64,000 nt of DNA, from IMG/VR virus record IMGVR_UViG_3300037245_001419, positions 147,778-211,777 of that record. One strand, written 5' to 3'. Below the pieces are notes generated by a model. The model had not been told where the DNA came from, did no database searches, and was given only the letters and a program-made list of their open reading frames with translations. This document shows, in pieces, positions 8,843 to 61,373 of this stretch. Each line of letters opens with the position of its first letter. Within the stretch, counting starts at the first letter, position 1. A program made the position numbers and the translations under genes.

Positions 8843-8894
8843 AAAAAAACCCCTGCCATTTATCAATAGTTAAGTCAACAGGGCAGGGGTTTTT
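8843..8894. terminator. bidirectional rho-independent terminator
   Basis: A7-CCCCTGCC...GGCAGGGG-T5. Confidence 0.75.
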
Positions 8895-8911
8895 CAATAG
8901 GGTTGTTGCTA

Positions 8912-9484
8912 TTAAGCAACAGCCTTTTGAGCCCGACTTTTCTTTAAAGACCTGTTTTCTTTTTCAAGCTTTGCAATATTAGCCTTCATTGTGTCATGTT
9001 CATCAGCACGACTAATATCTTCCATAACAGCGACAATGCTACTAGGGGTTTCTTCAATCTCTTTAGCAAGCTTATCAGATTCAATCTTTTTACGCATTAC
9101 TGAATTAATTAACTCTTTATGCTCTTTGGTGAAGCTATCAGAACCTTTTGTAAGCTCGTATAACGCCATGAATTTGCTAAGATCGAAACGTCCTTCACCT
9201 TTAGGCATGCTGTATACAGGCTTGCTGTAATCCGAACCTATAGCAAACTGAGCCTTGATCTCTTGTGCGCTATAGCCTTGATCAGCCATGAGAACAACTG
9301 CATCTCTTCTCGTTTTAGCTTCTTCGATTGTTTCCATTGTACCAAAATAATCTTGAGTTTTGCCAACTTTTTTAATTATACGAAACTTACCATTCCAGTC
9401 TACAATATATTTCATCGTAGGGTCTTTTTTTGCTTTTTTTTCTTGGGAGGCGATTGCGTTTTCTGATTTGTTAGATGCGCTCAT
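8912..9484 (-). CDS. AP2-like DNA-binding domain protein with coiled-coil tail
   Basis: KYIVDWNGKFRIIKK...YFGTMETIEEAKTRRD resembles the AP2 three-strand-plus-helix pattern. Confidence 0.55.
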   Translation of the reverse strand: MSASNKSENAIASQEKKAKKDPTMKYIVDWNGKFRIIKKVGKTQDYFGTMETIEEAKTRRDAVVLMADQGYSAQEIKAQFAIGSDYSKPVYSMPKGEGRFDLSKFMALYELTKGSDSFTKEHKELINSVMRKKIESDKLAKEIEETPSSIVAVMEDISRADEHDTMKANIAKLEKENRSLKKSRAQKAVA

Positions 9485-20007: not shown

Positions 20008-20253
20008 TTAATGCTCTATTCCATAACGGAAGGTTTTTCGTTGTATTAAAATATAACCCAAAAACAGATTTTTACATTCATAACCAGCATATCTATAACT
20101 TCCACCTTCCCATTTGGATTTAGCTTCTTTTATACATGATTCGTAAGATAAGGAATTACTTTTTTTTCCTTTATTAACGAAATTAGAATTACTTTTTACG
20201 GCACAGCCAACTAAAGTAACCGATATGAGTAAACATAATATTATATATTTCAT
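20008..20253 (-). CDS. small lipoprotein
   Basis: signal peptide ending in LVGC lipobox. Confidence 0.65.
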   Translation of the reverse strand: MKYIILCLLISVTLVGCAVKSNSNFVNKGKKSNSLSYESCIKEAKSKWEGGSYRYAGYECKNLFLGYILIQRKTFRYGIEH

Positions 20254-20340
20254 TTTATTCCTTCTATATGATTACATTATTAAAGTTAGTTAATTAAATA
20301 AGTTATGTCAATATAAAACTGAAGTATTTGGCGAATTGAT

Positions 20341-20976
20341 CTAATAAGATTTTTTTATTTTTTTCAACTTATAGCGTCCTTCGATATTTTTTGGAAAATT
20401 TGCGAAGTAATTTAATAAAACTTTTTGACTGGAATTATTCCATATTTTCTTATCTATGCCTATTTTACCTTCCCAAGCCTTATATGAATTAGAAACTCTA
20501 TTTACTGGATACATATCTAACCAAACATGTTTTGTATTGATAATACGTTCGTATGGAACATAAGAAGTTGTTTTTGTAGTTGTCTTATAATTTTTATTTT
20601 TATAGATTGATACATCAACTTCACCTAATTTTGTCTGGTTGGGAGTATTCAATTTACCCTTAGTTGTACTGTAGTTAGTTACGGGTCTAACTCCTGTTTG
20701 TTTTGTAGTTGATTCGCTTGTACTAACAAACATAAGATAATCAGCCTTTAAGGTTTTAGTATATACTTGAAACCCTAAACCATTCATTGCTTCGTATACA
20801 TCATAAACCAAATTTCTGTCTTCAATACTACTATTATCCAAAGTAACAATTAGGATTTTAGAATCTTGGTTAATAGATATAGATTTGTCCGATCGGCCTA
20901 AAAAATATGCAGATTTTGTTTTATGGTGAGTACAGTTCATTAATAACAATGTGAGTAGTAATAATAGAATTTTCAT
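20341..20976 (-). CDS. lipoprotein
   Basis: MKILLLLLTLLLMNC lipobox. Confidence 0.7.
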   Translation of the reverse strand: MKILLLLLTLLLMNCTHHKTKSAYFLGRSDKSISINQDSKILIVTLDNSSIEDRNLVYDVYEAMNGLGFQVYTKTLKADYLMFVSTSESTTKQTGVRPVTNYSTTKGKLNTPNQTKLGEVDVSIYKNKNYKTTTKTTSYVPYERIINTKHVWLDMYPVNRVSNSYKAWEGKIGIDKKIWNNSSQKVLLNYFANFPKNIEGRYKLKKIKKSY

Positions 20977-20979
20977 AAT

Positions 20980-21765
20980 TTAGTTCTCCTTGTTAAAAGA
21001 AATATGTTGGCACGGATATACTTTAGTTTCATCGGATGAGCTATAGTAGTATAAACTCCCTATGACAACAATGCTATCGAATTGTGATATTGCAGATATA
21101 CTAGCATACAGATGATGATCACTAAGGTCGTAAGTACTATAATCTCTTGTTCTATCGAACTCCATTAGTTCACCGTCTAGATAGCGGATATAGTCGTCGT
21201 ATATTGTTAACGGGTGCTTAAGGAGTAAATAAGATTCATCACCAATAAAAGCTTCAACTAAAGTATCTGGTAAAAACATCAGTTCCTTATTTTCTAGTTC
21301 ACCTTTTACAGAGTGAAAATAATATTTCAAAACAGAATCACCAATAAGCATAGCAACATCATATTCTGTTGTAGAATCGTATTCGTCGCTGTACACTGTA
21401 AGGCTAAAGAATGTTGTATCACCAAACGTTGTATCAAATACCATATTCCCTAGACTAAGTGTTGTATCAATAGTGAATCCTTCAGATTTGTGATGTATGC
21501 TAGTGTAATTTGCATAGTCTGTTGAGTCATCTGCATTCCAATATCTAGGGTTATTATCTAGACCAAATTCGACAGGATAAAAGCCGATAGAATCGGATAT
21601 TACCAGTTCCCAATTATGTTTTACTGTACCGTCTACAATTTCTGATTCTGAACAGTAGCCATGTATAATAGGGTCTTGTTTAGGCTTAGATGAATATGTT
21701 ATTTTGTCGGAGCACCCAACTAAAGTAATCGACAACACTAGTAGTGTCATAATACATAATTTCAT
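20980..21765 (-). CDS. lipoprotein
   Basis: LVGC lipobox; acidic beta-rich mature part. Confidence 0.75.
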   Translation of the reverse strand: MKLCIMTLLVLSITLVGCSDKITYSSKPKQDPIIHGYCSESEIVDGTVKHNWELVISDSIGFYPVEFGLDNNPRYWNADDSTDYANYTSIHHKSEGFTIDTTLSLGNMVFDTTFGDTTFFSLTVYSDEYDSTTEYDVAMLIGDSVLKYYFHSVKGELENKELMFLPDTLVEAFIGDESYLLLKHPLTIYDDYIRYLDGELMEFDRTRDYSTYDLSDHHLYASISAISQFDSIVVIGSLYYYSSSDETKVYPCQHISFNKEN

Positions 21766-21766
21766 A

Positions 21767-22072
21767 TTACCAAGAACTTTTTGCTAATATACGAGAAGAA
21801 CTTTGATTGACAATTGATACTACAATTGAAGAACCTACTCGTTTCACATAAACATCCTTAATCAAATTTGCCATATCTTCAAGTTCTTCTTTAGATGAAT
21901 CGTATTGAGAACTTGATAGCTGAACCCACAGAGAATTATTTCCAGCATAATAACACTCTATAACTGGCGAGTTTGATATTATATAATCTCCAAATTCTTT
22001 CTGTGTTGATGAAGGTGTGTATGCATACGTCATAGAGACTAAACATATGGTAATAAATATTATTTTTAACAT
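21767..22072 (-). CDS. secreted hypothetical protein
   Basis: signal peptide ending TYA. Confidence 0.7.
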   Translation of the reverse strand: MLKIIFITICLVSMTYAYTPSSTQKEFGDYIISNSPVIECYYAGNNSLWVQLSSSQYDSSKEELEDMANLIKDVYVKRVGSSIVVSIVNQSSSRILAKSSW

Positions 22073-22122
22073 GGTATATCCTTTTTGTTACTAAATTTAA
22101 TTAATTATACATAAATTGTCTA

Positions 22123-46291: not shown

Positions 46292-46805
46292 AATATAAAC
46301 CCCTATCCTTTAACGATTGACTGAAGTTGTGACGATATAGCTATATATTCAGCTACATTTTGAGGTGTACTATTTGCGATACATTCCGCTTTCAATTCGT
46401 TCTTTCTTACATTTAATTCGTTTAATTCTAAAACTGACATTTGATTAACTCCTTAATCTGTGTAACTTATCTATGAACTAAGATAGCTTATTATATAACA
46501 CCCGTCAACATAATAATGCATAAAAGATAAAATAAATTAATTTATACCCATAGACACAAAAAAAGCCCCCTACATAGTAGAGGGCAAAATAGAAACGTGA
46601 TATACTTTAGTTTATAATAAACCGTTAACCTTTGATTGATTCACCTTTGAACGGGGAGCAGTGCACAAATTGAAAGATGTAATAGATTTGCGAGCGATTG
46701 AGATTTTTTGAATAGATTTAAACATATGTGATACCTTTTAGTTATTAACTTATCTATGAACAATAATAGCTTATTCATTAATATAATACAAGGGGAAAAT
46801 ATACT

Positions 46806-46967
46806 TTAGTTATAAACAGGCTTTACATGATACCTATATGCACCATATATATTATCTAATTTATCGGCTCGATTACGGGCGGTTTTTCGTTGGTGTGATT
46901 TATATTCTTTCAATACCTTTTTTGTGTGACCATCAATCAAAGTATAGCCTATTATCTCATTACTCAT
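46806..46967 (-). CDS. small conserved phage protein
   Basis: ARNRADKLDNIYGAYRY; start moved to MSNEI. Confidence 0.7.
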   Translation of the reverse strand: MSNEIIGYTLIDGHTKKVLKEYKSHQRKTARNRADKLDNIYGAYRYHVKPVYN

Positions 46968-47082
46968 ATTATACCTACAAAGTTTATTATGTAACAAATA
47001 TAGCTTATTAACTAAAGTATAGTACATATAATTTTATTTAATCAATCGCCCCGATATACTACACAACATAAGATTATTATAG

Positions 47083-47160
47083 TATATTTAAGATACCCCA
47101 ACGGTTGACTACTATATCTCATTTCGAGAACAACGGGGAGGAGTGAAGACTATTCATTAG
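47083..47160 (+). ncRNA. candidate small RNA, copy 2
   Basis: ATACCCCAACGGTTGACTACTAT...ACGGGG...AGTGAAG...TTCATTAG shared with copy 1. Confidence 0.4.
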
Positions 47161-47232
47161 AATATAAACATATACTAATATACTTCAGTTAAAAAAAAAG
47201 CCCCGTATATACTAGGGCCTATTTACTTTAGT

Positions 47233-47478
47233 TTAAATATTATGTTTAATCTTATCTTGAGTAATTAAATTCTCAGTCATATATACACCGCTCAAAGCTT
47301 GATTCTTAAGTTCATTACTAATAAAACCGCTTTCAGCCATTACTAGTAATATCTTATCGTTAGAGCGTGAATTTATTACACGGGCCGTTAATGAAGGCCA
47401 CCGCTTATCAATACAATCATTTAAACGTCTTATATCTGCTTTTGATAACTTGATTGATTTCTTTTCTAAAACTGCCAT
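47233..47478 (-). CDS. hypothetical protein, first gene of the leftward array
   Basis: own promoter and AAGGAG. Confidence 0.75.
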   Translation of the reverse strand: MAVLEKKSIKLSKADIRRLNDCIDKRWPSLTARVINSRSNDKILLVMAESGFISNELKNQALSGVYMTENLITQDKIKHNI

Positions 47479-47539
47479 TTAATTAACTCCTTAACTTATC
47501 TATGAATAAAGATAACATATTAACTAAGATATACAAGGG

Positions 47540-49260
47540 GAAAATATACTTCAGTTACACGGGACAATCTAAAGAGATTAAACATACAATATATTAAGCC
47601 ATATAAGAGCATATACACCCACTAAAATAGATCTTTAATACCATAGGATACAAAAGCCATAAAAGAGCTTATATACACCTTAAAATAGAAACTAGATATA
47701 CTTCAGTTATAAACGCATAAACAAAACATATTATATACAAGGGAAAAACAGCGTATACTTTAGTTATTTGAGCCAGTTCTCAATGAGCACCAAAAACTAA
47801 AAAAACTAAACATAGCTAATTAACGATGCTCATAATTAGTTAATAAGCTAATAGGATATACTAGAGTTATTATAGTTACTTTAGTTATTAGACCCCCTAT
47901 GTAAACTAAAGTAAAATAAACCTTCATATAACGTACATTATGTAAACTACTCATATGTGCACTTGACAAACTCAAAAAAGTATTACATACCATATAAGAA
48001 GCAAACTAAAGTATTTTATACCGTTTTTACTCTGTCCCCACACAATCCACCAGCACAGTATATTATATAACGCTAATATAGATAGATTCGTAAGTTGTAA
48101 CCACTACAAAGATATATTCATAACCATAAGCTAAAGCACTTTAGTTTGTAACCAATACAACAAAGGAATCAATCTATATCAGTATATGCTAATATGTAAT
48201 CATACTTCAGTTGTACCCGTAACAACTTGTAATGAGTACAATGTAACATACACCACCGCCATGGTACGATGACAAGATGTAACCAATACAACTTAGTACA
48301 CACCACATATATGTAACACACTTTAGTTTGTACTCATTACAACGTAACATTGTAACCATTACATGTATACACTAAAAGAACACTAATAACTAAAGTAAAT
48401 GTCATATGTACAGTAAGGTACGAAAACTTTAGTTTCTTTAGGCGATTAAAGCTCAAAAACAGCACATTTGCGCTGACGGTACTTTCAGGCCGTGTCCTAT
48501 GTGATTATACCCAACCCCCTACAAAAGCCCTTAAGCACACCTTAAAACGTATTTAAAGAGCTATGCAACTTAGCTACAAACTAAAGTAGTATATGATGAT
48601 ATACTTACGGACTAATCAACATAAACCCTTTATGTCAATACGACAGTATGTACTTAATGTACAATATACATACAGATCTACTTTAGTTTACCATCATATT
48701 ATAATATTAGTATATCATCATACAGTCATGGATTACTTTAGTTTATTAGTATATGATGATATTAGCATACAGTGATATACTCATGCACCTATATTAGTAT
48801 ATCATAATATACTGTGTCTTGCAAACCTTAGTGTCAGACTTACACTAAGGTAGGGTCCCCAGGGGTGATGGTTTCCCCCTCCTCCACGAGAGCCAATATA
48901 AGTCTCTCAGAGGGTGGCCGACTCTATATAATTCCGTTTCTCTAAAAAAATTTTAGAATAAAAAATTACTGCAGGGGTCGATGTACAAACTAAAGTAGTT
49001 TTAGTCGCAACTGAAGTAGTTCTTATTGTTAACTGAAGTATAACATTTACTCCATTATTGCCGGATACTGGCAAATTCAGCGTAATACTTATATATCCCT
49101 TGTATTTGCTGTTTAAGACGTTTCTAAAGCAATCTAAAGATACTCACCCATCTGTATTGTAAGAACTGACTAAGGGCCTGGAAGGGTATCTAAAGTGTCT
49201 AATTCGTCTATTGCTGTCCGACATTGTCTATTGTATTAGTCTAAGGCCAAAGGAGTAGAA
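47540..49260. other. 1.7-kb non-coding repeat-rich block (candidate genome terminus or origin)
   Basis: no credible ORF; about 15 AACTRAAGTA copies, TTGTA-N5-TACAA x7, TAGTATATSAT x4, GC-rich hairpins at 48826-48925. Confidence 0.6.
48095..48364. repeat. cluster of 7 TTGTA-N5-TACAA palindromic boxes
   Basis: starts at 48095, 48146, 48211, 48227, 48277, 48328, 48350 (three with one mismatch). Confidence 0.8.
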
Positions 49261-49266
49261 GATACT

Positions 49267-49563
49267 TTAGTTTACTTCCCATGGTTCTTCAGATGATGGT
49301 GTAAGGAACTCAAATAAGATATTCTTAAGTAATTGAATATAGTCTTCATTTGAGATATTTGGATCGAACTTAACAATACCATTAGTTATTTGATCAACAG
49401 CGTAGTACATGAAATCATCGAACTGAGAGTTATCACTGGCTTTGTGTAGATCTGGTTCTTCCAGATATGTGTCAACTAAAGTAGCATACCTGTTGTAAGT
49501 TACTACAAAAGCTTTCGTCTTGTCAGAAGGCCCCACCAATCTATCTAGAGATTCAACATTCAC
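49267..49563 (-). CDS. HLDTLV...PWEV family protein
   Basis: SLDRLVGP ... EPWEVN*. Confidence 0.8.
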   Translation of the reverse strand: MNVESLDRLVGPSDKTKAFVVTYNRYATLVDTYLEEPDLHKASDNSQFDDFMYYAVDQITNGIVKFDPNISNEDYIQLLKNILFEFLTPSSEEPWEVN

Positions 49564-49743
49564 TTAGTTAACCTCCCATGGTTTGTTGTTAACGCCTTCT
49601 AACTCTGCATGAGTATAAAGTCTTGGTTTGAAAATGCTTGGAATAGTCATACCTGGTGTAGGGTTGCGATTAAACTCTTCTGCAGCACAGAACACAGGTT
49701 TTGTTTTAACGAGCGCATCCAGGTGTTTGACTAGATCAATCAC
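49564..49743 (-). CDS. HLDTLV...PWEV family protein
   Basis: GTG start; KHLDALVK ... KPWEVN*. Confidence 0.8.
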   Translation of the reverse strand: MIDLVKHLDALVKTKPVFCAAEEFNRNPTPGMTIPSIFKPRLYTHAELEGVNNKPWEVN

Positions 49744-50069
49744 GGAGGACATCCTTCGTCATAATCATATGTGTGTGGCCCATCTTCGCCAGCTTTCATT
49801 TCGACCACCCAATCCAGATATTCTTTAGATGGTTCATCTAGATCAAAGCGATGATCAATCGTTCCGTCTCTCCATTTCGCTACAGATATGAGAACCTTCG
49901 TACCTTTTGCTATACGAGCACATTGATCCATGACCCATGTCTTATGATGTTCTCCATCGATTCCACCATACTTCTCAATCCAAAGTAACATCCAATCATG
50001 TATCTTGTAAGAGCTATATTCATTTGGATCAGCCATTGGGAATTCCCCTAAGTAATTTTCTTCAGACAT
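49740..50069 (-). CDS. conserved phage hypothetical protein
   Basis: YGGIDGEHHKTWVMDQ motif. Confidence 0.8.
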   Translation of the reverse strand: MSEENYLGEFPMADPNEYSSYKIHDWMLLWIEKYGGIDGEHHKTWVMDQCARIAKGTKVLISVAKWRDGTIDHRFDLDEPSKEYLDWVVEMKAGEDGPHTYDYDEGCPP

Positions 50070-50143
50070 TGAGTTTCCTTTAGGTTGTAAAAAAGCTCCA
50101 GGCTGAGTACTATTACCCTAGTACAGCCCAAAAGCACATTACT

Positions 50144-50323
50144 TTAGTTATTGATCTTCAATGGGCATTTGATAGATTCTCCTGACAATGCACTTGCTAA
50201 AAATCTTTTTACTTTTGGATGACTGCAATATGATGCAGTTCCACTTGTACACCCATAATTGAACCGTTTGATGCCACCATATTGGCACACTCCGGTTTTG
50301 GATAATTCGCACGGATAACTCAT
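50144..50323 (-). CDS. small Cys-containing protein (59 aa)
   Basis: GGAG RBS; MSYPCELSKTGVCQY...CPLKINN* ending in AACTAAAGTA. Confidence 0.65.
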   Translation of the reverse strand: MSYPCELSKTGVCQYGGIKRFNYGCTSGTASYCSHPKVKRFLASALSGESIKCPLKINN

Positions 50324-50352
50324 ATTTCTCCCAGGTAAACCCGATCATTTTA

Positions 50353-50408
50353 AACTAAAGTATAATAGAAACTTATAGACGTGTCAATAGAATAAATGTA
50401 CTTTAGTT
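50353..50408. promoter_or_regulatory. class-II bidirectional promoter
   Basis: minus TTGACA-17-TATACT and plus TAGACG-17-TACTTT, bounded by inverted AACTAAAGTA. Confidence 0.75.
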
Positions 50409-50440
50409 AACTCTATTAATTTAAACATAAGGAATGCTAA

Positions 50441-50869
50441 ATGAGAGTTTTATTACTAAGCATAATAACAATCATGATTGGTTGTGCTGGAATACCTGTA
50501 AACTACCATAACGATCATCCTCGGCTGAACGGATCTAAACACACATATATAGGACAAGACATATACTTTGAAGAGTTCATTATCGGAGAGGGTGATTATT
50601 CAGGTTATATTTTTGGTAACAGTTGTCGTTATGAGCTTATTCTTATGATGGTATCAAAGTCAAAGGTTGTCATAGAATATAATGAATATATAAAATCTAG
50701 TTCCTATGGTGAGTTTCGCATGGATGGGCCTTGGCTCATAAGACAAGGATTCACTAAACAATTCGAATATGAACTTACAGATGGAAAAGGTGAGATCGCA
50801 TATAAAAAATTAAGATTTGTTATTGTTGGGGTTGAAAATCACGGAATATCAACTATTAGGTCAAACTAA
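50441..50869 (+). CDS. lipoprotein
   Basis: MRVLLLSIITIMIGC lipobox. Confidence 0.75.
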   Translation: MRVLLLSIITIMIGCAGIPVNYHNDHPRLNGSKHTYIGQDIYFEEFIIGEGDYSGYIFGNSCRYELILMMVSKSKVVIEYNEYIKSSSYGEFRMDGPWLIRQGFTKQFEYELTDGKGEIAYKKLRFVIVGVENHGISTIRSN

Positions 50870-50886
50870 AGTAAAAAGGAAATAAC

Positions 50887-51939
50887 ATGAAGATAATAAT
50901 ACTATTAGTATTATCAATTTTGTCGGCTGTAAGTGGCGCAAACATAGATGAAGATTATTTAATTTGTCGAGAATTTGAAAAGAAAAAGGATTGGCCTAAA
51001 GTAATTGATTATTGTGACAAATCTATAAAAAACAAGCCTGAAGGCAACAACCCATATTATAAGTTATGTCTAGCACATAGTATGGTAGGCAATAATGAGA
51101 AAGCTCTTGAAAATTGCACCATAGTTATAGTTCGTAAAAAATTAAGTCTAGATTTACAATACTCGTCATATTATTATAGAGCGTTGGCAGGTTATAATTT
51201 AAAGTATTATGATAAAGCTATATCTGATATAGATAATGCTATCACATTAAACAAAAAAGGTATGGCGCAATATATATTACAAGGTAAAATTAGATATAGT
51301 TTAAGTGAATATAAAAAAGCGGATATAAGTTTTTCTCATGTTATCAACCAGGATCGCAATAATTACACTGCAACATATGGTAGATATCTTGCAAGGTTAA
51401 AGTTAGGTAATTACAAAGGTGCATACACTGATATAACATATGCCATAGATATTAATAAAACCAAAGAAATATCCAAGTTATATGTATTACGTGGCATAGT
51501 ATCGAGTAAATTGTCTAGGCACAAGCAGTCATTTGCTGATTTTGATCACGCACTTAGTATAGATTCTACAAATTATAACTCACATATTGGAATAGCAAAA
51601 CTTAAACATAAATTGTGCGACTATTACGGTGCTATTCGTTCATATAACCATGCTATAAAATTAAGTGTCAATAATTCATCAATTTTAACACATCGTGCAG
51701 ATTCATGGTCGGAATTAGGTGAATATAAAAAAGCATTCGCAGACTGCAACCTTGCTATTAAAATAGATGCTAACTACGCAGAAGCATATTATATGCGTGG
51801 TATTATACAATTAAAACGAAATATACTAGACAATAAAGGGTTATATGATTTGTCTATAGCTGCAAATTTGGGTATGTTTGAGGTATATAAAGTTTTAAGT
51901 GAAATACACAATGAACGAAAATCAATCAAACTAAAGTAG
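50887..51939 (+). CDS. secreted tetratricopeptide-repeat protein
   Basis: signal peptide; repeated 34-aa units such as YYYRALAGYNLKYYDKAISDIDNAITL. Confidence 0.9.
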   Translation: MKIIILLVLSILSAVSGANIDEDYLICREFEKKKDWPKVIDYCDKSIKNKPEGNNPYYKLCLAHSMVGNNEKALENCTIVIVRKKLSLDLQYSSYYYRALAGYNLKYYDKAISDIDNAITLNKKGMAQYILQGKIRYSLSEYKKADISFSHVINQDRNNYTATYGRYLARLKLGNYKGAYTDITYAIDINKTKEISKLYVLRGIVSSKLSRHKQSFADFDHALSIDSTNYNSHIGIAKLKHKLCDYYGAIRSYNHAIKLSVNNSSILTHRADSWSELGEYKKAFADCNLAIKIDANYAEAYYMRGIIQLKRNILDNKGLYDLSIAANLGMFEVYKVLSEIHNERKSIKLK

Positions 51940-51965
51940 TATAAATATTGGTAAAAGAGGTACAG

Positions 51966-52127
51966 ATGGCTTACTATCCTAATCATCCACCTACGCTATA
52001 TGGTGACGATGCAGATTATTTTTTAAACAAGTTAGATGAGATTGCTAAGCTTCCTAAGCAAGTAATATCTGATGAAAAGCGTAAGAAGTTTGAAGAGTTA
52101 TTCAGAAGATCCGGTATGCGACTCTAA
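51966..52127 (+). CDS. small hypothetical protein
   Basis: GAGG RBS; stop overlaps the convergent gene. Confidence 0.6.
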   Translation: MAYYPNHPPTLYGDDADYFLNKLDEIAKLPKQVISDEKRKKFEELFRRSGMRL

Positions 52128-52468
52128 AGTACTTCCCATGGATCACACTCACGTTGATCATTGTTCATCATATATCTGCAGAGGTTATCGATATTAGCTG
52201 AAGTATCGTAACCAGGTTTGTAGTTATATTGTTTTAGTACATTGGAGTATAGTTTGCTACCATCGTAAACCCTATTTCTATTTTTGTATTCAACTGTGTA
52301 TAAGCAGTTATTAGGATCAGCCATATCAACCCATCGTCCAATCTTGATATCACCATCAACTAAAGTATAATTCATTTTCAGTGTATAGGCTTTTAACATA
52401 GCGTTATACAATCTATCACATTCAGGAGTTCTTGGCCCAACTAAAGTATCCAGGTGTTTAGGGTTCAT
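52124..52468 (-). CDS. HLDTLV...PWEV family protein
   Basis: MNPKHLDTLVGP ... DPWEVL*. Confidence 0.85.
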   Translation of the reverse strand: MNPKHLDTLVGPRTPECDRLYNAMLKAYTLKMNYTLVDGDIKIGRWVDMADPNNCLYTVEYKNRNRVYDGSKLYSNVLKQYNYKPGYDTSANIDNLCRYMMNNDQRECDPWEVL

Positions 52469-52668
52469 GTTACTTCCCATGGTTCGTTGTATGAATCTGA
52501 GAAGGATATGACACTAATATCACATCCTTCTGGACATAGATATTCGAGAGTTTTTGATATTCCATCTGGGGTATATTCTAAGTATGTAAGCATAAGTTTA
52601 AATTGTATATGATGGATTTTGCAATGATCGCAAGGCCCAACTAAAGTATCAAGGTGTTCTATATTCAC
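52465..52668 (-). CDS. HLDTLV...PWEV family protein
   Basis: EHLDTLVGP ... EPWEVT*. Confidence 0.85.
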   Translation of the reverse strand: MNIEHLDTLVGPCDHCKIHHIQFKLMLTYLEYTPDGISKTLEYLCPEGCDISVISFSDSYNEPWEVT

Positions 52669-52669
52669 T

Positions 52670-53020
52670 TTAGTTTACTTCCCATGGTTCATAAGAACTA
52701 TCCGTATTGCGAGCAAGCATTTTACATTTCTCATCTAAAGACGTAAATCCAATATCGTCAGTAGTACCATTGATATCATGAGTTATATTATCATCGAACA
52801 CCCATATACACCCTGATGTATCCGTTTTAAATACCCTAAGCATTTTAGAACTAACTATGCCAGGGTTATCAATTTTTACTTCGATTGTAAATATACCATC
52901 AGATATAACATCCCCTACTACACAATCATAATACGTTAATAATATAAATTTGTGTAGTTTTTTATATAGATGGCACTTCGGCCCAACTAAAGTATCAAGG
53001 TGTTCAACTAGTTCATTCAC
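52670..53020 (-). CDS. HLDTLV...PWEV family protein
   Basis: GTG start; EHLDTLVGP ... EPWEVN*. Confidence 0.85.
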   Translation of the reverse strand: MNELVEHLDTLVGPKCHLYKKLHKFILLTYYDCVVGDVISDGIFTIEVKIDNPGIVSSKMLRVFKTDTSGCIWVFDDNITHDINGTTDDIGFTSLDEKCKMLARNTDSSYEPWEVN

Positions 53021-53021
53021 T

Positions 53022-53330
53022 TTAGTTAACTTCCCATGGGTTCGAGACATAGGTTAGAGAACTCGGTCTATAACGGCATGAGTACACATAGACAACAGCA
53101 TCAAATATTTCTGCTTTAATATCTTTGCGGACTTCGAAACGATCACAACCTACTTCAGTTATAAATCCTTCCTCGATAAGCCTATCTCTTGTGCTCTCGA
53201 TAATCTTTACTCGATTCTGAGATGGGAATAGAACTTCCCGTTCGACATCTCTATAGAACTTATCCCATATGATTCTCTCATACCCATCGGGTTTAACTAA
53301 AGTATCAAGGTGTTTAATGAGATCAACCAT
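53022..53330 (-). CDS. HLDTLV...PWEV family protein
   Basis: KHLDTLVKP ... NPWEVN*. Confidence 0.85.
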   Translation of the reverse strand: MVDLIKHLDTLVKPDGYERIIWDKFYRDVEREVLFPSQNRVKIIESTRDRLIEEGFITEVGCDRFEVRKDIKAEIFDAVVYVYSCRYRPSSLTYVSNPWEVN

Positions 53331-53511
53331 ACCACTCCATATCTAGAGTACATATTATTTTAACTCCACAGTTGGGACATTTACCATAAGCGTCTTTCAT
53401 GTAATATATTGTACCTTTTGGATAAGATTCTTTAATCTTCAGTACTTTAAACTTTACATACTTCCTGCAGTTCTCACATGTCTTTTCAGCATATTCTTTT
53501 TCAATTTCCAT
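53323..53511 (-). CDS. small zinc-ribbon protein
   Basis: CENC...CPNC. Confidence 0.7.
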   Translation of the reverse strand: MEIEKEYAEKTCENCRKYVKFKVLKIKESYPKGTIYYMKDAYGKCPNCGVKIICTLDMEWYG

Positions 53512-53512
53512 A

Positions 53513-53836
53513 CTAAAGTACTTCCCATGGTATTGGTTTAATATATATTCCCATAATAAGAAGTGCTTTAGCTTCTGTTCGGATTTTTTCAGGAGAATGG
53601 CATATCATACGATAGCTATCATATTCATACGTTATTACATTTTCACTATCTGACATATATTCACAATGTATTACTATACGTCCATTGTGTTGATTATAGA
53701 TTCTAATGGTATCCGTATTGATAATCTGTCTGTTACTATGCATAGCCTTTTTAAAGTCTTCACATACGTCATTAATTCGTATGGTACGCTCGTCCGGCCC
53801 AACTAAAGTATCCAGGTGTGTTATTCTACTGTCCAC
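53513..53836 (-). CDS. HLDTLV...PWEV family protein
   Basis: THLDTLVGP ... IPWEVL*. Confidence 0.85.
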   Translation of the reverse strand: MDSRITHLDTLVGPDERTIRINDVCEDFKKAMHSNRQIINTDTIRIYNQHNGRIVIHCEYMSDSENVITYEYDSYRMICHSPEKIRTEAKALLIMGIYIKPIPWEVL

Positions 53837-54186
53837 GGCTCACTGATTCCTTTAGATCTAATCAACATCCTACATTTATCATCGAGGTCAACCAATCCCT
53901 TTCCTTCTCTAGATATATTAGTAGAAATATTACTTTTAAATATGTACAATTGTACTTTAGTTTCGACATTAGTAATTATGTAACAAAGTTCATTCCTGGT
54001 TACATTACCGTTAAAATCTGCAGTATCAGCTAAAGCACCAACGCACATGTGATATGGATATTCATCAATAACATCATCTGCTTTAAGATCCATGGCTGGA
54101 AACTGAAGTATAAAGTCATACAGTTTTTGATGATGTGGGGATCTGCTCCCAACTAAAGTATCAAGGTGTTTTACAATCTCGTACAT
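53821..54186 (-). CDS. HLDTLV...PWEV family protein
   Basis: KHLDTLVGS ... EPWTVE*. Confidence 0.85.
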   Translation of the reverse strand: MYEIVKHLDTLVGSRSPHHQKLYDFILQFPAMDLKADDVIDEYPYHMCVGALADTADFNGNVTRNELCYIITNVETKVQLYIFKSNISTNISREGKGLVDLDDKCRMLIRSKGISEPWTVE

Positions 54187-54613
54187 ACTGCCCCAGGTTG
54201 TTATTTAGATCAGCGATGTAATCAGCTAGTTCCTTCCCTATGACACCATAAGGAAATAGTTCTTCACCGTGTTCAGTCTCTATAACTTTGCACCAACAGT
54301 CCTTCCCATCAAAGCAATCTTTAACTATCCACTTGCAAATGAACGGCTCTATATTCTTAAGGACAAACTCTGCAGTATCTTCATCCATATCGGTCAATAC
54401 TTTAGTTACCTTCATATTGTGTATATCAGTGATGTATTTAGCCATCTCTTTAGGCATACAGAAGTACTCGAACACTTCATAATCATTATCAGGCCATTGA
54501 TCCGTTACAACCAGATCTACATGGTCTCCATACTTATTAATACAACCTACGACCCACTTTAGTTTATATGAGTCTTCTTGTTGTTTAATGTATTTCTTCT
54601 CGTCCCAGGTCAT
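54161..54613 (-). CDS. hypothetical protein with internal duplication
   Basis: KWVV...KEMAKYITDIHN repeated as KWIV...KELADYIADLNN. Confidence 0.75.
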   Translation of the reverse strand: MTWDEKKYIKQQEDSYKLKWVVGCINKYGDHVDLVVTDQWPDNDYEVFEYFCMPKEMAKYITDIHNMKVTKVLTDMDEDTAEFVLKNIEPFICKWIVKDCFDGKDCWCKVIETEHGEELFPYGVIGKELADYIADLNNNLGQYVRDCKTP

Positions 54614-54990
54614 ACAACCTCATATATGTATATGGTGTTTTTAACAATGTCATCCCAGTATCGTTCAAGAGCAGGAGGATATATAACCATAGCACCTTTT
54701 TCTGTCGTAGCCACAGCTATAATATTTGCAGGATCTAGGCTTTGTATTACGTTGGTTGCAATCACGTCATCAACGTCATCACAGTTAACAATCTTATTAA
54801 TTGGCGTAAGTTCCATTAACTTTAGTTTCTCTTCCAGGGTCTCGACTTCTGGCAAATCTTTGACAAGTTTTTCGATAGAATCTGTCATTAATACTGGACG
54901 CATATCAACCGTAGCGTCAAGATCTAACGCATAACGGAATTTGTTATCTGAGTTTGTAACAACCAGATTTGCAACTATATATTTTTTCAT
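54610..54990 (-). CDS. hypothetical protein
   Basis: GGAG-TACTTTAGTT-ATG start. Confidence 0.7.
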   Translation of the reverse strand: MKKYIVANLVVTNSDNKFRYALDLDATVDMRPVLMTDSIEKLVKDLPEVETLEEKLKLMELTPINKIVNCDDVDDVIATNVIQSLDPANIIAVATTEKGAMVIYPPALERYWDDIVKNTIYIYEVV

Positions 54991-55008
54991 AACTAAAGTA
55001 TCTCCCAC

Positions 55009-55398
55009 TTAGTCTTCTAGATAATGGATTTCAGGTTCTGCAGATTCTTCATACATGACAATAGCGTACATATCTCTCATACCGGAACCATCAGCTATAT
55101 GTGGTTTGATCCAATCGAGGAATGTTTCTATCTCATCCTCATAATTTTTTATATTGCATCTACTAGATAAGTGCCATGCCTTCGATATTTTGTCAAACCA
55201 CATCTTTGCAACTGGATCTATTACACCGAAGTAATAACTTCCAGATCCATTCACAGGGTTCCTCATATCACAAAAATCTTGTATGACTTTAGATTTATCG
55301 TGGTCAATATCAAAGAGATACTTGCATGTTTCTATAATTTCTGGTGGGGTATTTTCGTGAAGTCTTGCCCCAAATATTAGTTCTGTGTACATTCCCAT
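55009..55398 (-). CDS. conserved phage hypothetical protein
   Basis: MGMYTEL...IKNYEDEIETFLDWI. Confidence 0.8.
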   Translation of the reverse strand: MGMYTELIFGARLHENTPPEIIETCKYLFDIDHDKSKVIQDFCDMRNPVNGSGSYYFGVIDPVAKMWFDKISKAWHLSSRCNIKNYEDEIETFLDWIKPHIADGSGMRDMYAIVMYEESAEPEIHYLED

Positions 55399-55411
55399 AA
55401 TTCCTCCGGTT

Positions 55412-55467
55412 AACTAAAGTATAATAGAAACTTGTAGACGTGTCAATAGAATTAATGTACTTTAGTT
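55412..55467. promoter_or_regulatory. class-II bidirectional promoter
   Basis: near-identical to 50353-50408. Confidence 0.75.
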
Positions 55468-55470
55468 TCA

Positions 55471-55621
55471 GCCGGAGAATCGGAATACAGGTGATTCTCT
55501 AAGAGAGTCTGCGACATGGCATAACATCTGAACGGTTTCTATAGAAGTAGGTGCAAGTTATATAGAGGTGCTAGTAAGATGGCCTAGGATAGTTGTACTC
55601 TGTCCTCCCAGACTCTTTTTT
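55471..55621 (+). ncRNA. candidate structured RNA or long 5' leader
   Basis: GC-richer; 8-bp hairpin, then an 11-bp long-range stem (55501-11/55609-19) enclosing further helices, ending in a T run. Confidence 0.45.
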
Positions 55622-55643
55622 AAACTAAAGTAAATAGGAAGTT

Positions 55644-56309
55644 ATGAAAACGATATTAATATTAATAGTGCTGCTATCATCTATGGGTTTTTCAAATCAG
55701 TGCATTAGACTTGACGATTCAGATGCTTATGTCGATTGTTTAATTAAGGCAAATGAGGGTAAAGAAGAACCAGAATCTAAACAAGTAGAGTATATAGAAG
55801 ATTATTATACACATAATGAGGATTCATTAAGAATATATACACTTGTCGGAGCTGGTTATACACAGGGAACCTTTACTAGTTTTAGTAAAATTAACATGTT
55901 TATTGGCGTTATACCAGAAGGTTGGAATAACGGAATTATGTTCAGTGTTAAGATTTCAAATACAAAACCATCTAATATAAAAGATACATCACCACATAAT
56001 TCTAAAGTTTACCGCATTGTCGATGGTGAGATACTTCAACTAAATTTAGGTTTTCCATTCCCATTGCATAATAATATATTTTTGATTCCTATTGTGGGAG
56101 TGGCATCGGTAGAGAGATACACCCAAATCCTCGATGGGGATGATGGTACATATCATGTAAAAAAAGATAGAGACTCTTATAATGTTTTTGGTATGGGGTT
56201 CTTATTTAAAACTAATCGTTTTATTTGGGGAGTTGACATTGAATATCCTTTTGATAGATTCCCAACGATAGGAATTAATATAGGATTATTTATTACGGAG
56301 TTAAACTAA
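55644..56309 (+). CDS. secreted protein, probable outer-membrane beta-barrel
   Basis: signal peptide; alternating amphipathic strands (FGMGFLF, WGVDIEY, IGINIGLF). Confidence 0.6.
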   Translation: MKTILILIVLLSSMGFSNQCIRLDDSDAYVDCLIKANEGKEEPESKQVEYIEDYYTHNEDSLRIYTLVGAGYTQGTFTSFSKINMFIGVIPEGWNNGIMFSVKISNTKPSNIKDTSPHNSKVYRIVDGEILQLNLGFPFPLHNNIFLIPIVGVASVERYTQILDGDDGTYHVKKDRDSYNVFGMGFLFKTNRFIWGVDIEYPFDRFPTIGINIGLFITELN

Positions 56310-56320
56310 AGTAGGTTACG

Positions 56321-56500
56321 ATGAAAGATATTAAGAAAGGTTACTACTGGGTAAAGTTTTACAACCATGATGTAATGCAAGTAATGTTATTTAATGGCAA
56401 GAATTTTGAAGGCTTCAAGAGTGACAAATTAATTCATGATGAGATAGAGGGTTACGAGTATATTGATTACCCACCAGTTGACTTGTGTATCGACAACTAA
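56321..56500 (+). CDS. small hypothetical protein
   Basis: MKDIKKGYYWVKF...; stop within the shared AACTAAAGTA. Confidence 0.65.
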   Translation: MKDIKKGYYWVKFYNHDVMQVMLFNGKNFEGFKSDKLIHDEIEGYEYIDYPPVDLCIDN

Positions 56501-56814
56501 AGTACTTCCCATGGCCCACCCTTCGATGGAGTACTCCACGATAGTGTAAAATACTTGGTTGCTAGTTCAGTAATATCGTCATGCATATATAGTAGAACAT
56601 AATATGGTCGTGAGGGTTCCCAGTATTTAGATTTCTCTAAGACATTTTTGTCTATAAGAACGATCCTCATATCGACAAACACTTCGTTATTGTAGAAATT
56701 ATGGAAAGGATCAGTAAGAGCCTTCACTATTTGCTTTACTAGTTTACCGTATATCTTAGATGCGAACTCAGAGGGTTCAACTAAAGTATCAAGGTGTTTA
56801 ATAATTTCAGTCAT
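56497..56814 (-). CDS. HLDTLV...PWEV family protein
   Basis: KHLDTLVEP ... GPWEVL*. Confidence 0.85.
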   Translation of the reverse strand: MTEIIKHLDTLVEPSEFASKIYGKLVKQIVKALTDPFHNFYNNEVFVDMRIVLIDKNVLEKSKYWEPSRPYYVLLYMHDDITELATKYFTLSWSTPSKGGPWEVL

Positions 56815-57005
56815 ACTTTAATATCTTTTTTATTGGCTATTACTAGTCCATTATCATTCAGTGTTTTAATAAATTCATGCCACTCTATGGTATATGGTGG
56901 AGCGTAATCGTACCCATCATTAAACAATTCACCTTCAACTACCATTTCCATCTTAGGAAATAATCGTTTTAACCGTTCAATCAATAATCTATGCTGGTTT
57001 TTCAT
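56811..57005 (-). CDS. hypothetical protein
   Basis: uses GGAGGT in the upstream WEV codons as RBS. Confidence 0.7.
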   Translation of the reverse strand: MKNQHRLLIERLKRLFPKMEMVVEGELFNDGYDYAPPYTIEWHEFIKTLNDNGLVIANKKDIKV

Positions 57006-57008
57006 ACT

Positions 57009-57311
57009 TTAGTTTACCTCCCATGGTGGGCATATTAAATAAAGTGTAGTAATTGATTTACAATAACTGTCTAATATGATATTAGCTATAGAACTTCCAT
57101 CATAATCAATTACAAATGGTTTTGCATTCTTGTATGTTATCTCAAAACGTTTAATATGATTATCAGTCACGTTGACAATTTTAATATTATTATCAGAATA
57201 TGTACAATCTTTAATTGATAGCTTATCAAATGTAGAAGTTAATAGATTGTGTAAATCTATGTATTCCTGGGGTATCGGCCCAACTAAAGTATCCAGGTGT
57301 TGTATATTCAC
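57009..57311 (-). CDS. HLDTLV...PWEV family protein
   Basis: QHLDTLVGP ... PPWEVN*. Confidence 0.85.
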   Translation of the reverse strand: MNIQHLDTLVGPIPQEYIDLHNLLTSTFDKLSIKDCTYSDNNIKIVNVTDNHIKRFEITYKNAKPFVIDYDGSSIANIILDSYCKSITTLYLICPPWEVN

Positions 57312-57312
57312 T

Positions 57313-57702
57313 TTAGTTTACCTCCCAGGGCTTCATAGAATCAATGTTTTTAATTCTATATGTATGATGAGTTCCCAGATGGGTGTTCGCTTGTGTCATA
57401 TAGCTGTTCTCAACCAATGATATGTAATGTTCCACATCACAATCTTCAAATATTATCATCACTTCACCCTCACCAGTTTTCATAAAGGTTGCATGTCCAT
57501 CATCTACTACAAGGTGCTTAATCTCAGTAAGACTACGCTCATAAAATGAGTGGTATAGTTCCATATCGGCATATACTTCATAAACAAACAATGGCTGATT
57601 TAAAAAATCATCCACAATGGTTGATAGATAGTGATAATATATTGGTGGTACACTACCAGATATTATCGGCCCAACTAAAGTATCCAGGTGATCGACATTC
57701 AA
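57313..57702 (-). CDS. HLDTLV...PWEV family protein
   Basis: DHLDTLVGP ... KPWEVN*. Confidence 0.85.
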   Translation of the reverse strand: MNVDHLDTLVGPIISGSVPPIYYHYLSTIVDDFLNQPLFVYEVYADMELYHSFYERSLTEIKHLVVDDGHATFMKTGEGEVMIIFEDCDVEHYISLVENSYMTQANTHLGTHHTYRIKNIDSMKPWEVN

Positions 57703-57703
57703 T

Positions 57704-58015
57704 TTAGTTTACTCCCCATGGATCACCATACGGTTTAGCATCTACTAGCATCATTAGAGTTTCAGTTATATATCTATCTGCAGCAGGATTTATGCGATAC
57801 ACAGGGTTTCTAGATGAGTATCGTCCTTTCATGGACTTAGTTACAAGCTTAAGTTTTATAAGTCTTTCCCTAAGTTCCACCACAGTACAATCGCTATAGA
57901 ACATAGCGGATGGATCTGTCAGTCCTGCTTTGATTAAAGGGCACATACTTTCTTGTCTGTCCGCATGTCTAGTACATGGTTTAATTAAAGTATCAAGATG
58001 TTTAATATCATTCAT
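57704..58015 (-). CDS. HLDTLV...PWEV family protein
   Basis: KHLDTLIKP ... DPWGVN*. Confidence 0.85.
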   Translation of the reverse strand: MNDIKHLDTLIKPCTRHADRQESMCPLIKAGLTDPSAMFYSDCTVVELRERLIKLKLVTKSMKGRYSSRNPVYRINPAADRYITETLMMLVDAKPYGDPWGVN

Positions 58016-58252: not shown

Positions 58253-58328
58253 AACTAAAGTATATTTTAAATATGTACTATTGTCAATAAAAATATAGAC
58301 AGATACATGGAATATATTTACTTTAGTT
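58253..58328. promoter_or_regulatory. class-II divergent promoters
   Basis: minus TTGACA-17-TATACT; plus TAGACA-17-TACTTT. Confidence 0.7.
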
Positions 58329-60567: not shown

Positions 60568-60608
60568 GACTCAAACTAAAGTATCCAGTTATTTAACGGT
60601 TACTTTAG

Positions 60609-60794
60609 TTATGCCTTCATAATACTGATATAGTTTTCCATACATTTAAGAGAGCATAGGACTATCGTATAGGGTCTTAAGCTGTGTCCGTGTATAGAAT
60701 GCTTAGTGATAGAGAACCATGACTGACCATGTCCCATAGCCTTATAATCGAACTCTGTGGTACATGCGTTGCATATTTGTTTAGAATCTTTCAC
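60609..60794 (-). CDS. small Zn-finger protein
   Basis: CNAC...CSLKC. Confidence 0.65.
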   Translation of the reverse strand: MKDSKQICNACTTEFDYKAMGHGQSWFSITKHSIHGHSLRPYTIVLCSLKCMENYISIMKA

Positions 60795-61317: not shown

Positions 61318-61373
61318 AACTAAAGTATAATAGAAAGTTATAGACATGTCAATAGAAAGTAATTACTTTAGTT
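61318..61373. promoter_or_regulatory. class-II bidirectional promoter
   Basis: third near-identical copy. Confidence 0.75.

Follow-up and report, generated by a model that had tools for sequence, protein, structure and literature searches.

Gene organization at the locus

The DNA analyzed here, in the following called the window, comprises 64,000 nt (positions 147,778 to 211,777) of the IMG/VR record IMGVR_UViG_3300037245_001419, an uncultivated giant phage with a genome of at least 212 kb. It harbors twelve small minus-strand genes in three operons, the products of which carry x(3-7)-HLDTLV-x-P at the start and PW-x-V-x-stop at the end. The genes, the junctions between them and the promoter elements are listed below by window position and strand.

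49267..49563 (-): g49267, 98 aa, GTG start directly after the stop of g49564; N box decayed (SLDRLVGP); ends PWEVN
49564..49752 (-): g49564, 62 aa, ATG start; N box decayed (HLDALVKT); ends PWEVN
52124..52468 (-): g52124, 114 aa, alpha/beta LDxxC core type; operon-terminal; ends PWEVL
52465..52668 (-): g52465, 67 aa, GTG start; ends PWEVT, with ATGA overlap onto g52124
52670..53020 (-): g52670, 116 aa, GTG start; alpha/beta LDxxC core type (modelled)
53022..53330 (-): g53022, 102 aa, ATG start after the non-member Zn-ribbon gene; aligns with the winged-helix-like group
53513..53836 (-): g53513, 107 aa, GTG start inside the degenerate junction; ends PWEVL before the Zn-ribbon gene
53821..54186 (-): g53821, 121 aa, ATG start; alpha/beta LDxxC type; ends PWTVE
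56497..56814 (-): g56497, 105 aa, ATG start; winged-helix-like core (modelled); operon-terminal; ends PWEVL
57009..57311 (-): g57009, 100 aa, GTG start; alpha/beta LDxxC type
57313..57702 (-): g57313, 129 aa, TTG start; singleton core
57704..58015 (-): g57704, 103 aa, ATG start; first family gene of operon 3; winged-helix-like group; ends PWGVN
52633..52687 (-): canonical junction g52670 to g52465, with C box including the SD, AAC-TAA stop, A, GTG restart and N box; inverted 9-mer pair
52979..53039 (-): canonical junction g53022 to g52670
57276..57330 (-): canonical junction g57313 to g57009; its N box is the crossover point in the related contigs L124 and L125
57667..57721 (-): canonical junction g57704 to g57313 (TTG restart)
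49528..49581 (-): junction g49564 to g49267, with the DNA of the N box decayed
53795..53838 (-): degenerate junction g53821 to g53513; about 11 nt are missing and the genes overlap
52433..52482 (-): variant junction g52465 to g52124 (ATGA overlap)
58253..58287 (-): promoter of operon 3, TTGACA-17-TATACT, with the -10 box overlapping the 10-mer described below
55412..55467 (-): promoter element of operon 2 (11/12 sigma70 match), bracketed by an inverted 10-mer pair
50353..50408 (-): promoter element of operon 1, another copy of the same ~56-nt element

The genes were first recognized in an earlier note made from the sequence alone, which described twelve small proteins with constant termini around unrelated cores, and this observation is confirmed. 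All twelve ORFs exist on the minus strand, and a scan of all six frames of the window found exactly these 12 ORFs with both LDxL[VI] near the start and PWxV at the end, and none in unrelated loci. In the 12-way alignment, the only invariant columns are L, D, L at the N terminus and P, W, V at the C terminus. The C-box DNA occurs 8 times against 0.10 expected. Some details of the account had to be corrected. The true starts of two genes lie downstream of the longest ORF, g52124 starting at 52468 and g52670 at 53020, and g53513 is not operon-terminal but is followed by a non-member Zn-ribbon gene. Furthermore, the motifs are far more conserved as DNA than the note implied. Two candidates for additional matches were discarded: the protein P0013 (805 aa, six stretches) is a false positive, a repeat protein containing ILDDALVES, and L043, which looked motif-rich, is an unrelated tandem array.

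Diversity of the cores

The two core types distinguished in the earlier note are real. One alignment comprises g52670, g53821, g52124 and g57009 plus relatives (alpha/beta LDxxC type), the other g56497, g57704 and g53022 plus relatives (winged-helix-like type). With the termini trimmed, the two groups show no profile-profile similarity, the hhalign probability being 0.1% against 97.8% with the termini included. Within the subgroups the cores are homologous, with 29% identity over 95 aa for g52670/g53821, 32% for g52124/g57009 and 40% for g56497/g57704. In the two AlphaFold2 models, the predicted topologies differ (helix plus four strands plus helices, against helix-helix-hairpin-helix). Both termini lie outside the confident core with pLDDT below 50 in both models, and there is no sign that they meet.

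No known protein family could be assigned. Searches against Pfam, PHROGs, PADLOC and PDB sequences gave no hits, and the best Foldseek E-values were 0.03-0.16. The winged-helix resemblance of the second group is consistent across hits but weak (E 0.1-0.9, TM 0.3-0.4). Megablast of the region and of 25 kb of the window against deposited phages found nothing, and the best relative of the CCA-adding enzyme is about 36% identical. Searching for related phages through this enzyme returned only the same contig and one near-identical strain. A scan of a genome collection for the N box gave seven single chance hits, and two scans of a metagenome collection gave no hits and seven chance hits, respectively. 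Relatives came only from the protein cluster database and from exact-protein look-ups.

Structure of the junction and the window-wide 10-mer

The two protein motifs are the halves of one ~55-nt junction between consecutive genes. It reads C box CCATGGGARGTA, which contains the ribosome-binding site for the next gene, then a window-wide motif in reverse orientation supplying the stop (AAC-TAA-AGT), then a GTG or TTG start one base later, a short leader, and the N box CACCTKGATACTTTAGTTGRRCC carrying the motif in forward orientation. Both boxes lie inside the ORFs, with only 1 nt between stop and start. The junction contains no -35/-10 pair; strong promoter matches lie only at the three operon heads, and no terminator-like sites occur in 48.8-58.8 kb. 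A +1 frameshift at the stop, which would fuse consecutive cistrons, was considered and set aside because the P-site codon cannot re-pair.

The underlying 10-mer, T-ACTT[T/C]AGTT, occurs 164 times in the window, roughly every 400 bases. The form ACTTTAGTT is found 120 times (64 on +, 56 on -) and the C variant 44 times, in both orientations. The degeneracy is strict, with only T or C at position 5, T at -1 in 99 of 120 copies, and almost never C at +1. Pairs show a preferred orientation (12 against 2). In window-wide statistics, which rest on crude gene calls, the motif shapes the proteins: TLV is the commonest tripeptide (34 against 5.3 expected), 30 of 34 being encoded by the 9-mer against 7% expected, TKV, the reverse reading, is second, and 20 genes take their stop from AAC-TAA-AGT. 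A literature search for the 9-mer returned only incidental primers and sites.

Constraint acts on the DNA as well as on the protein. In 19 canonical distinct boxes, the third codon positions of GAT-ACT-TTA-GTT have zero entropy (0 bits), while the flanking Leu and Pro third positions have 1.4 and 1.9 bits and core dS runs from 0.44 to saturation. On the other hand, codon variation in the tails has three-base periodicity: the first Leu uses five codons, the Pro of PWEV four, and Val GTA or GTT. The two members that lost the DNA motif still keep L, D, L, V (P = 0.013 and 0.003 under neutral decay, joint P about 4e-5), so the tails are not merely passive. The residues after TLV (G/K/E, then P/S/T/F/L) and the E of PWEV vary.

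Position dependence and rearrangements in related contigs

The last residue (N or L), the start codon (GTG/TTG or ATG) and the leader residues follow the position of the gene in the operon, not its core. The same g53022 core starts MVDLIKH with ATG and ends PWEVN here, whereas it starts VNIKY with GTG in the related metagenome contig L122 and ends PWEVL where it is terminal in L120. Non-ATG starts occur in 6 of 7 internal genes against 0 of 5 others (P = 0.015).

In related metagenome contigs, cassettes are lost, gained, reordered or fused with crossovers exactly in the N box, the C box or the 10-mer. These unpolarized comparisons cover only about six independent events from five metagenome samples. 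The g57704 leader is joined to the g56497 core in the N box (L120, L121), and the N box of g57009 to the N box of g56497 (L124, L125). The g53022 core is joined to the g52124 end in the C box (L120). A 13-nt TACTTTAGTTTAA crossover removes gene 55644-56309, and a 10-mer crossover sits inside a lipoprotein signal peptide (L101). In total, 10 of 28 breakpoints lie within 3 nt of a motif copy (P = 5e-6 against random positions, 1e-4 to 5e-4 against a gene-boundary null).

Interpretation

We favor the view, with a probability of roughly 0.6, that the twelve genes are unrelated small early-gene cassettes held together by the junction module, and that the constant protein ends are this module translated on both sides. 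The layout of the module, and the fact that the boxes and the bare 10-mer are the points at which related phages differ by loss, gain, reordering and fusion of cassettes, follow directly from the sequence comparisons. The remainder is inference. The module would couple translation of successive genes by termination and restart, a mechanism that rests on geometry alone since the junction RNA is no more stable than shuffled sequence. Recombination between modules, by short homology or possibly helped by a factor that recognizes the 10-mer, would both shuffle cassettes and keep the ends identical. The encoded tails would be tolerated as flexible ends, with a few residues constrained at the protein level. 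The cargo proteins are probably host-takeover or counter-defence accessories, and one subgroup may be a winged-helix DNA binder. Early expression is likewise only suggested by the near-consensus sigma70-type promoters.

The earlier note proposed that the two ends meet to form a shared docking or sorting tag delivering diverse cores. On this reading, the N- and C-terminal peptides would be a shared recognition signal for one partner, such as a hub, a protease, a chaperone or the capsid, and the DNA identity would be secondary. This interpretation is only partly supported: the unrelated cores and the protein-level selection on a few tail residues hold, while the joining of the ends into a tag, its central inference, is not supported. 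A tag role is not excluded but appears unlikely. In its favor, the constrained residues (L, D, L, V and P, W, V) sit on unrelated cores, the tails are predicted to be flexible, as short linear motifs usually are, and the T-even internal proteins offer a documented precedent (PMC3012670). Against it stand the dependence of the last residue, leader and start codon on operon position, the frozen synonymous sites, the variable residues in both tails, and the origin of TLV and N-stop as copies of a window-wide DNA motif. No prediction shows the ends meeting, and the promoters suggest early expression rather than late, virion-directed expression. The argument of the note that PWEV is kept in operon-terminal genes, where no downstream ribosome-binding site is needed, fails, because relatives show the same core switching between internal and terminal positions by recombination in the C box.

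Somewhat less likely still is an active, site-specific cassette system, in which the 10-mer would be the recognition site of a dedicated phage nuclease or recombinase that mobilizes the cassettes, comparable to an integron, a homing system or Chi, and the family junction a specialized double site. The extreme over-representation of the motif at a cost to protein composition, its strict degeneracy, the preferred pair orientation and crossovers using only 10-13 nt of identity speak for it. However, no integrase, recombinase or nuclease was seen among the roughly 40 proteins screened in this 64-kb part of the genome. Crossovers in the family use 11-25 nt of identity, which ordinary phage homologous recombination can exploit, and the proposal is without direct evidence of cleavage or binding.

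A doubtful alternative is an RNA element, in which the inverted 9-mer pair forms a hairpin that hides the restart codon, and selection on that hairpin keeps both boxes constant. There is a perfect 9-10 bp complement between AACTAAAGT and ACTTTAGTT, 19-25 nt apart and spanning the stop and the start, and an orphan pair at 60574-60610 folds well (z = -3.35). However, the junction folds are no better than shuffles (z -0.65 to +0.8), with competing structures, and Rfam gave no match. First-in-operon genes keep the N box without any upstream partner, and the orientation-independence of the motif across the window points to DNA rather than RNA. Finally, an ordinary paralog family, in which all twelve descend from one ancestral gene and the ends are the best-conserved structural elements of a common fold, is very improbable despite the homology within subgroups, given the trimmed-core comparison, the differing predicted topologies, the position of the termini outside the confident core, and chimeric genes showing that leaders and cores assort independently.

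A more far-reaching possibility, speculative and improbable on present evidence, is that the 10-mer is an actively recognized crossover or "linker" signal, a phage counterpart of uptake sequences or Chi that spreads by molecular drive and makes almost every gene of a jumbo phage a swappable cassette, and that in this family the linker-derived peptides have additionally been co-opted as a shared two-ended tag on unrelated effector cores. If the motif is recognized by a dedicated factor, this would be a new way for a virus to organize gene exchange, and would also provide a natural toolkit for modular assembly of phage accessory genes.

Phage genomes are mosaics, but the sequences at which modules are exchanged are rarely visible. 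Here they can be read directly, as a 10-base motif and a 55-base joint built from two copies of it, and relatives differ by clean cassette swaps at those points. Because the joint lies inside coding sequence, recombination would give unrelated proteins identical ends, which is a caution for reading shared termini as a targeting signal. The family itself is a pool of uncharacterized, presumably early proteins that can be screened for host-takeover or counter-defence activity.

Comparison with known systems

Among the closest known systems are the PeSL (promoter-early stem-loop) cassettes of T4-type phages (Arbiol et al. 2010, PMC2839356; Comeau et al. 2014, PMC4122927). Both are short conserved regulatory cassettes, repeated in a hyperplastic region full of small early ORFans, which carry the stop of the upstream gene and the SD and start of the downstream gene, and both serve as crossover points for insertion, deletion and replacement between close relatives. 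The differences are that the junction here has no promoter and no stable terminator hairpin, that it lies inside the coding sequences instead of between genes, so that unrelated proteins acquire identical N- and C-terminal peptides, and that it is built on a 10-mer also scattered through genes in both orientations. Separate promoter cassettes containing the 10-mer do exist in the window and are closer to true PeSLs.

The T-even internal proteins with the capsid targeting sequence (CTS; Rao and Black 2010, PMC3012670) are likewise otherwise diverse small phage proteins that share only a short constant terminal peptide, and a constant N-terminal leader on diverse proteins is also found here. The CTS is N-terminal only. 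It is removed by the prohead protease at an (L/I)-x-E site in late, packaged proteins. Here, there are two constant ends, host-type promoters that suggest early expression, and no conserved Glu or cleavage motif in x(3-7)-HLDTLV-x-P, only g52670 happening to have LVE.

The DNA uptake sequences of Pasteurellaceae and Neisseriaceae (Findlay and Redfield 2009, PMC2817400) are, like the 10-mer, 9-12-nt motifs present in both orientations at about one per 0.4-1 kb, embedded in coding regions in the reading frames that tolerate them, here TLV and TKV, so that they shape tripeptide usage, and found as inverted pairs at gene ends. In contrast, this is a phage genome and not a competent bacterium, no uptake machinery is implied, and the motif coincides with recombination breakpoints and promoter positions.

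Integron gene cassettes with attC sites are also promoterless cassettes of unrelated genes in arrays read from a common promoter, each bounded by a repeated site that contains an inverted repeat. The sites described here are 10-55 nt rather than 57-141 nt, consist in the junction of a 9-10 bp inverted pair 19-25 nt apart, lack the attC core sites, and are translated; no tyrosine-recombinase integrase was found among the window proteins screened. The stoperators and start-associated sequences of mycobacteriophages are comparable as 13-nt-class motifs repeated many times in a phage genome at gene boundaries, often overlapping stop codons. Those number 10-35 copies, depend on orientation, and are repressor or translation signals, whereas the motif described here is present in 164 copies in 64 kb in both orientations, many of them inside genes.

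Genomic context and the twelve-gene family

The viral contig IMGVR_UViG_3300037245_001419 comprises 211,777 bp, with a 248,963-bp version also existing, and the window, its last 64 kb, has a GC content of about 33%. The spacing of N-box matches in the contigs L004 and L006 equals that in the window, and the coordinates agree. The window encodes a DNA ligase and a CCA-adding enzyme and showed no close relative among deposited phages. On the minus strand between 49267 and 58015 lie three operons, each of which is located behind a copy of the same near-consensus promoter, TTGACA-17-TATACT, at 58287, 55446 and 50387. Together, these operons contain exactly twelve ORFs that start with x(3-7)-[HS]LDxL[VI] and end with PWxVx-stop, and the observation of twelve small proteins with constant termini, made in an earlier note from the sequence alone, is therefore confirmed. 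Two start codons were corrected in the course of the analysis, such that the genes g52124 and g52670 (named, like all members, after their coordinates in the window) start at 52468 and 53020, respectively.

A single junction element encodes both termini

When read as DNA, the end of one gene and the start of the next form a single junction of about 55 nt, which contains the following parts in this order:

C box: CCATGGGARGTA, which encodes P-W-E-V and contains the GGGARG ribosome-binding site
Stop: AAC-TAA, giving N and the stop codon
Restart: one A, followed by a GTG or TTG start codon
Leader: AAT-ATA-NAA, a short leader
N box: CACCTKGATACTTTAGTTGRRCC, which encodes H-L-D-T-L-V-G/K/E-P

The sequence AACTAAAGT, which spans the stop and start, is the exact reverse complement of ACTTTAGTT, which encodes T-L-V. 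In 19 canonical distinct boxes from the window and its relatives, the third codon positions of GAT-ACT-TTA-GTT never vary (0 bits), whereas the third positions of the flanking Leu and Pro codons carry 1.4 and 1.9 bits. Codon usage alone predicts ACT-TTA-GTT for only about 7% of T-L-V tripeptides. The cores are real genes (dN/dS 0.31-0.51) with synonymous divergence ranging from 0.44 to saturation, and the frozen sites therefore cannot be explained by recent common ancestry.

The terminal C box (52124-52141, 53513-53530 and 56497-56514) reads GGGAAG-UA-CUU-UAG, that is, an SD-like element, a short spacer, CUU and a stop codon. This arrangement resembles the RF2 frameshift site, and at every junction the next cistron lies in the +1 frame, one base after the stop, but the resemblance is probably coincidental.

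A 10-mer motif distributed over the window

The T-L-V part of the N box belongs to a motif that is found throughout the window. ACTTTAGTT occurs 120 times, 64 times on the plus strand and 56 times on the minus strand, where about one occurrence is expected. The motif extends to T-ACTT[T/C]AGTT, with T at position -1 in 99 of 120 copies. At position 5, only the C variant is also enriched (44 copies, with 5 for the next best variant), and the base that follows the motif is almost never C. In total, 164 copies were counted in the 64 kb examined, which is about one per 390 bp, and these are densest between 44 and 60 kb. The motif also occurs in another part of the same contig (L051) and in a second long contig (L078), where it is used in the same ways. 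An unrelated viral contig with 40% GC (L043) has at 8870-9140 a tandem array of ~40-nt units containing AACTAAAGTTAGTT-like palindromes, which matched the inverted-pair pattern by chance.

Based on a crude call of 149 genes, 38 copies are intergenic, 20 supply a stop codon as AAC-TAA-AGT, 30 lie in frame as T-L-V and 21 lie antisense as T-K-V. TLV is the commonest tripeptide of the window (34 against 5.3 expected), and TKV is second. Pairs in the order reverse-then-forward, 10-45 nt apart, occur 12 times against 2 for the opposite order. Genes in general are therefore flanked by the forward motif at the 5' end and the reverse motif at the 3' end, and in the family these flanks lie inside the ORF. 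Beyond the family, the motif was found in or near the following features:

12510, 25793, 29716, 34232, 36788, 38760 and 43520 (minus strand): seven copies of a ~55-nt promoter-leader cassette
20209-20217 and 21718-21726: motif copies inside the signal peptides of lipoprotein genes
46300-49260: a stretch of about 3 kb without any ORF of 90 aa or more
50353-50408, 55412-55467, 61318-61373 (and 58253-58287): three to four copies of a ~56-nt promoter element
60574-60610: an orphan inverted pair of the motif between convergent genes

The promoter-leader cassette (TTGACAT + 9-mer + AAT.AGCTAT.TTTAATAATAG ... AGGAG), in which the motif follows the -35 box, is often located just after a GC-rich hairpin. 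In addition, the motif overlaps the -10 box in four promoters. Each copy of the ~56-nt promoter element (TTGACA-17-TATACT) is bracketed by an inverted pair of the 10-mer, and at 61318 the motif runs straight into an ATG, which suggests a leaderless transcript. The orphan pair at 60574-60610 is the only such pair that folds clearly better than shuffled sequences (z = -3.35), so it may be a bidirectional terminator. The stretch at 46300-49260 is packed with motif copies, fragments of promoter cassettes, GC-rich hairpins and short repeats such as TGTAACCAATACAAC. It gave no match in Rfam and could be a regulatory or replication region, or consist of decayed cassettes.

The termini follow operon position

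A profile of the family found only 16 proteins among 1.84 billion representatives, all of which are from this phage lineage except for one false positive. The related contigs encoding them (L120 to L126 among them) show that the ends depend on the position in the operon and not on the core. The core of g53022 starts with MVDLIKH and ATG in the window, where it follows a non-member gene, while the same core starts with VNIKY and GTG in L122 and L120, where it follows another family member. It ends with PWEVN where another cassette follows, and with PWEVL in L120, where it is the last gene. The terminal form CCATGGGAAGT-ACTTTAG is the same 9-mer in the other orientation, again giving an in-frame stop. 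Non-ATG starts occur in 6 of 7 genes that follow a member and in 0 of 5 others (P = 0.015).

Rearrangements between related contigs

Segment-by-segment alignment of the related contigs to the window revealed clean crossovers, which represent about six independent rearrangements from five samples. In L120 and L121, the leader of g57704 is joined to the core of g56497 inside the 25-nt N box, with about 1.2 kb absent, and the protein P0004 is therefore chimeric. In L124 and L125, the N box of g57009 is joined to the N box of g56497. In L120, the core of g53022 is joined to the terminal end of g52124 at CCATGGGAAGT.

Outside the family, the plus-strand gene 55644-56309 is absent from L124 and L125, with a 13-nt crossover, TACTTTAGTTTAA. 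Furthermore, window 20220-22080, which holds lipoprotein genes, is absent from the related strain L101 (10037-10178), where the homology to the window ends at the 10-mer that encodes the TLVGC lipobox region within the signal peptide. Mature domains are therefore swapped behind a shared signal peptide. Of 28 unique homology ends, 10 lie within 3 nt of a motif copy, which gives P = 5e-6 against random positions and 1e-4 to 5e-4 against a gene-boundary null.

Further differences in gene content were seen in three contigs (L126 459-530; L120 4426-4692; minus strand of the locus; and L123 1-1299). In L126, a complete junction follows a terminal family gene with no family gene behind it, whereas in L120 an 88-aa gene ends with DEPWAVN-stop and has the C box but no N box. 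In L123, a second strain in the same sample (3300037245), a diverged g57704-type gene (P0006) is located between the operon-1 promoter and the 49740 gene, while the window (49937-50501) has a 59-aa Cys-rich gene at that position.

Cores and protein-level constraint

Within subgroups, the cores are homologous at 29-40% identity. With the termini trimmed, the two main groups show no profile similarity (probability 0.1%, E = 0.68), compared with a probability of 97.8% when the termini are included. AlphaFold2 models computed from shallow alignments have moderate confidence (pLDDT 67 and 70) and predict a helix, four strands and two helices for g52670 and a helix-helix-hairpin-helix arrangement for g56497. 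In both models, residues 1-11 and the last 3-12 residues have pLDDT below 50. The top Foldseek matches of the g56497 model are all winged-helix regulators, but these matches are weak (E 0.1-0.9), and the g52670 model has no match in the PDB or the viral library. Searches of Pfam, PHROGs, PADLOC, PDB sequences and Rfam gave no match.

In addition to the constraint on the DNA, constraint at the protein level is real. The first Leu uses CTC, CTG, CTT, CTA and TTG, the Pro of PWEV uses all four codons and the Val uses GTA or GTT, while first and second codon positions stay fixed. The genes g49267 and g49564 have 8 and 10 base differences from the consensus N box, yet both keep L, D, L, V (P = 0.013 and 0.003 under random substitution). 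By contrast, the H, the residue after TLV, the following P and the E of PWEV all vary.

Interpretation and comparison with known systems

The best-supported account, to which we assign a probability of about 0.6, is that the constant ends are the translated halves of a junction module. This module would supply the ribosome-binding site, the stop and a restart codon, and would serve as the crossover site for cassette exchange. The order of the elements in the junction and the position of the crossovers can be read directly from the sequences, whereas it is inferred, from sequence alone, that recombination keeps the module homogeneous, with a few encoded residues under additional protein constraint.

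The earlier note proposed that the two ends form a shared tag on diverse cores, and this interpretation is only partly supported. Such a two-ended tag remains possible, although doubtful, but it is not needed to explain the constancy of the ends, and the arguments in its favor are weakened by the dependence on operon position and by the window-wide motif. A dedicated enzyme acting at the 10-mer is a still more tentative possibility.

The closest documented system is the PeSL cassette of T4-type phages (PMC2839356, PMC4122927). The junction works like a PeSL but fails three of its four defining features, and within the window the seven promoter-leader cassettes come closest to a true PeSL. The way in which the 10-mer is embedded in proteins parallels bacterial uptake sequences (PMC2817400), and the T-even internal proteins with their capsid targeting sequence (PMC3012670) represent the analogue at the protein level.
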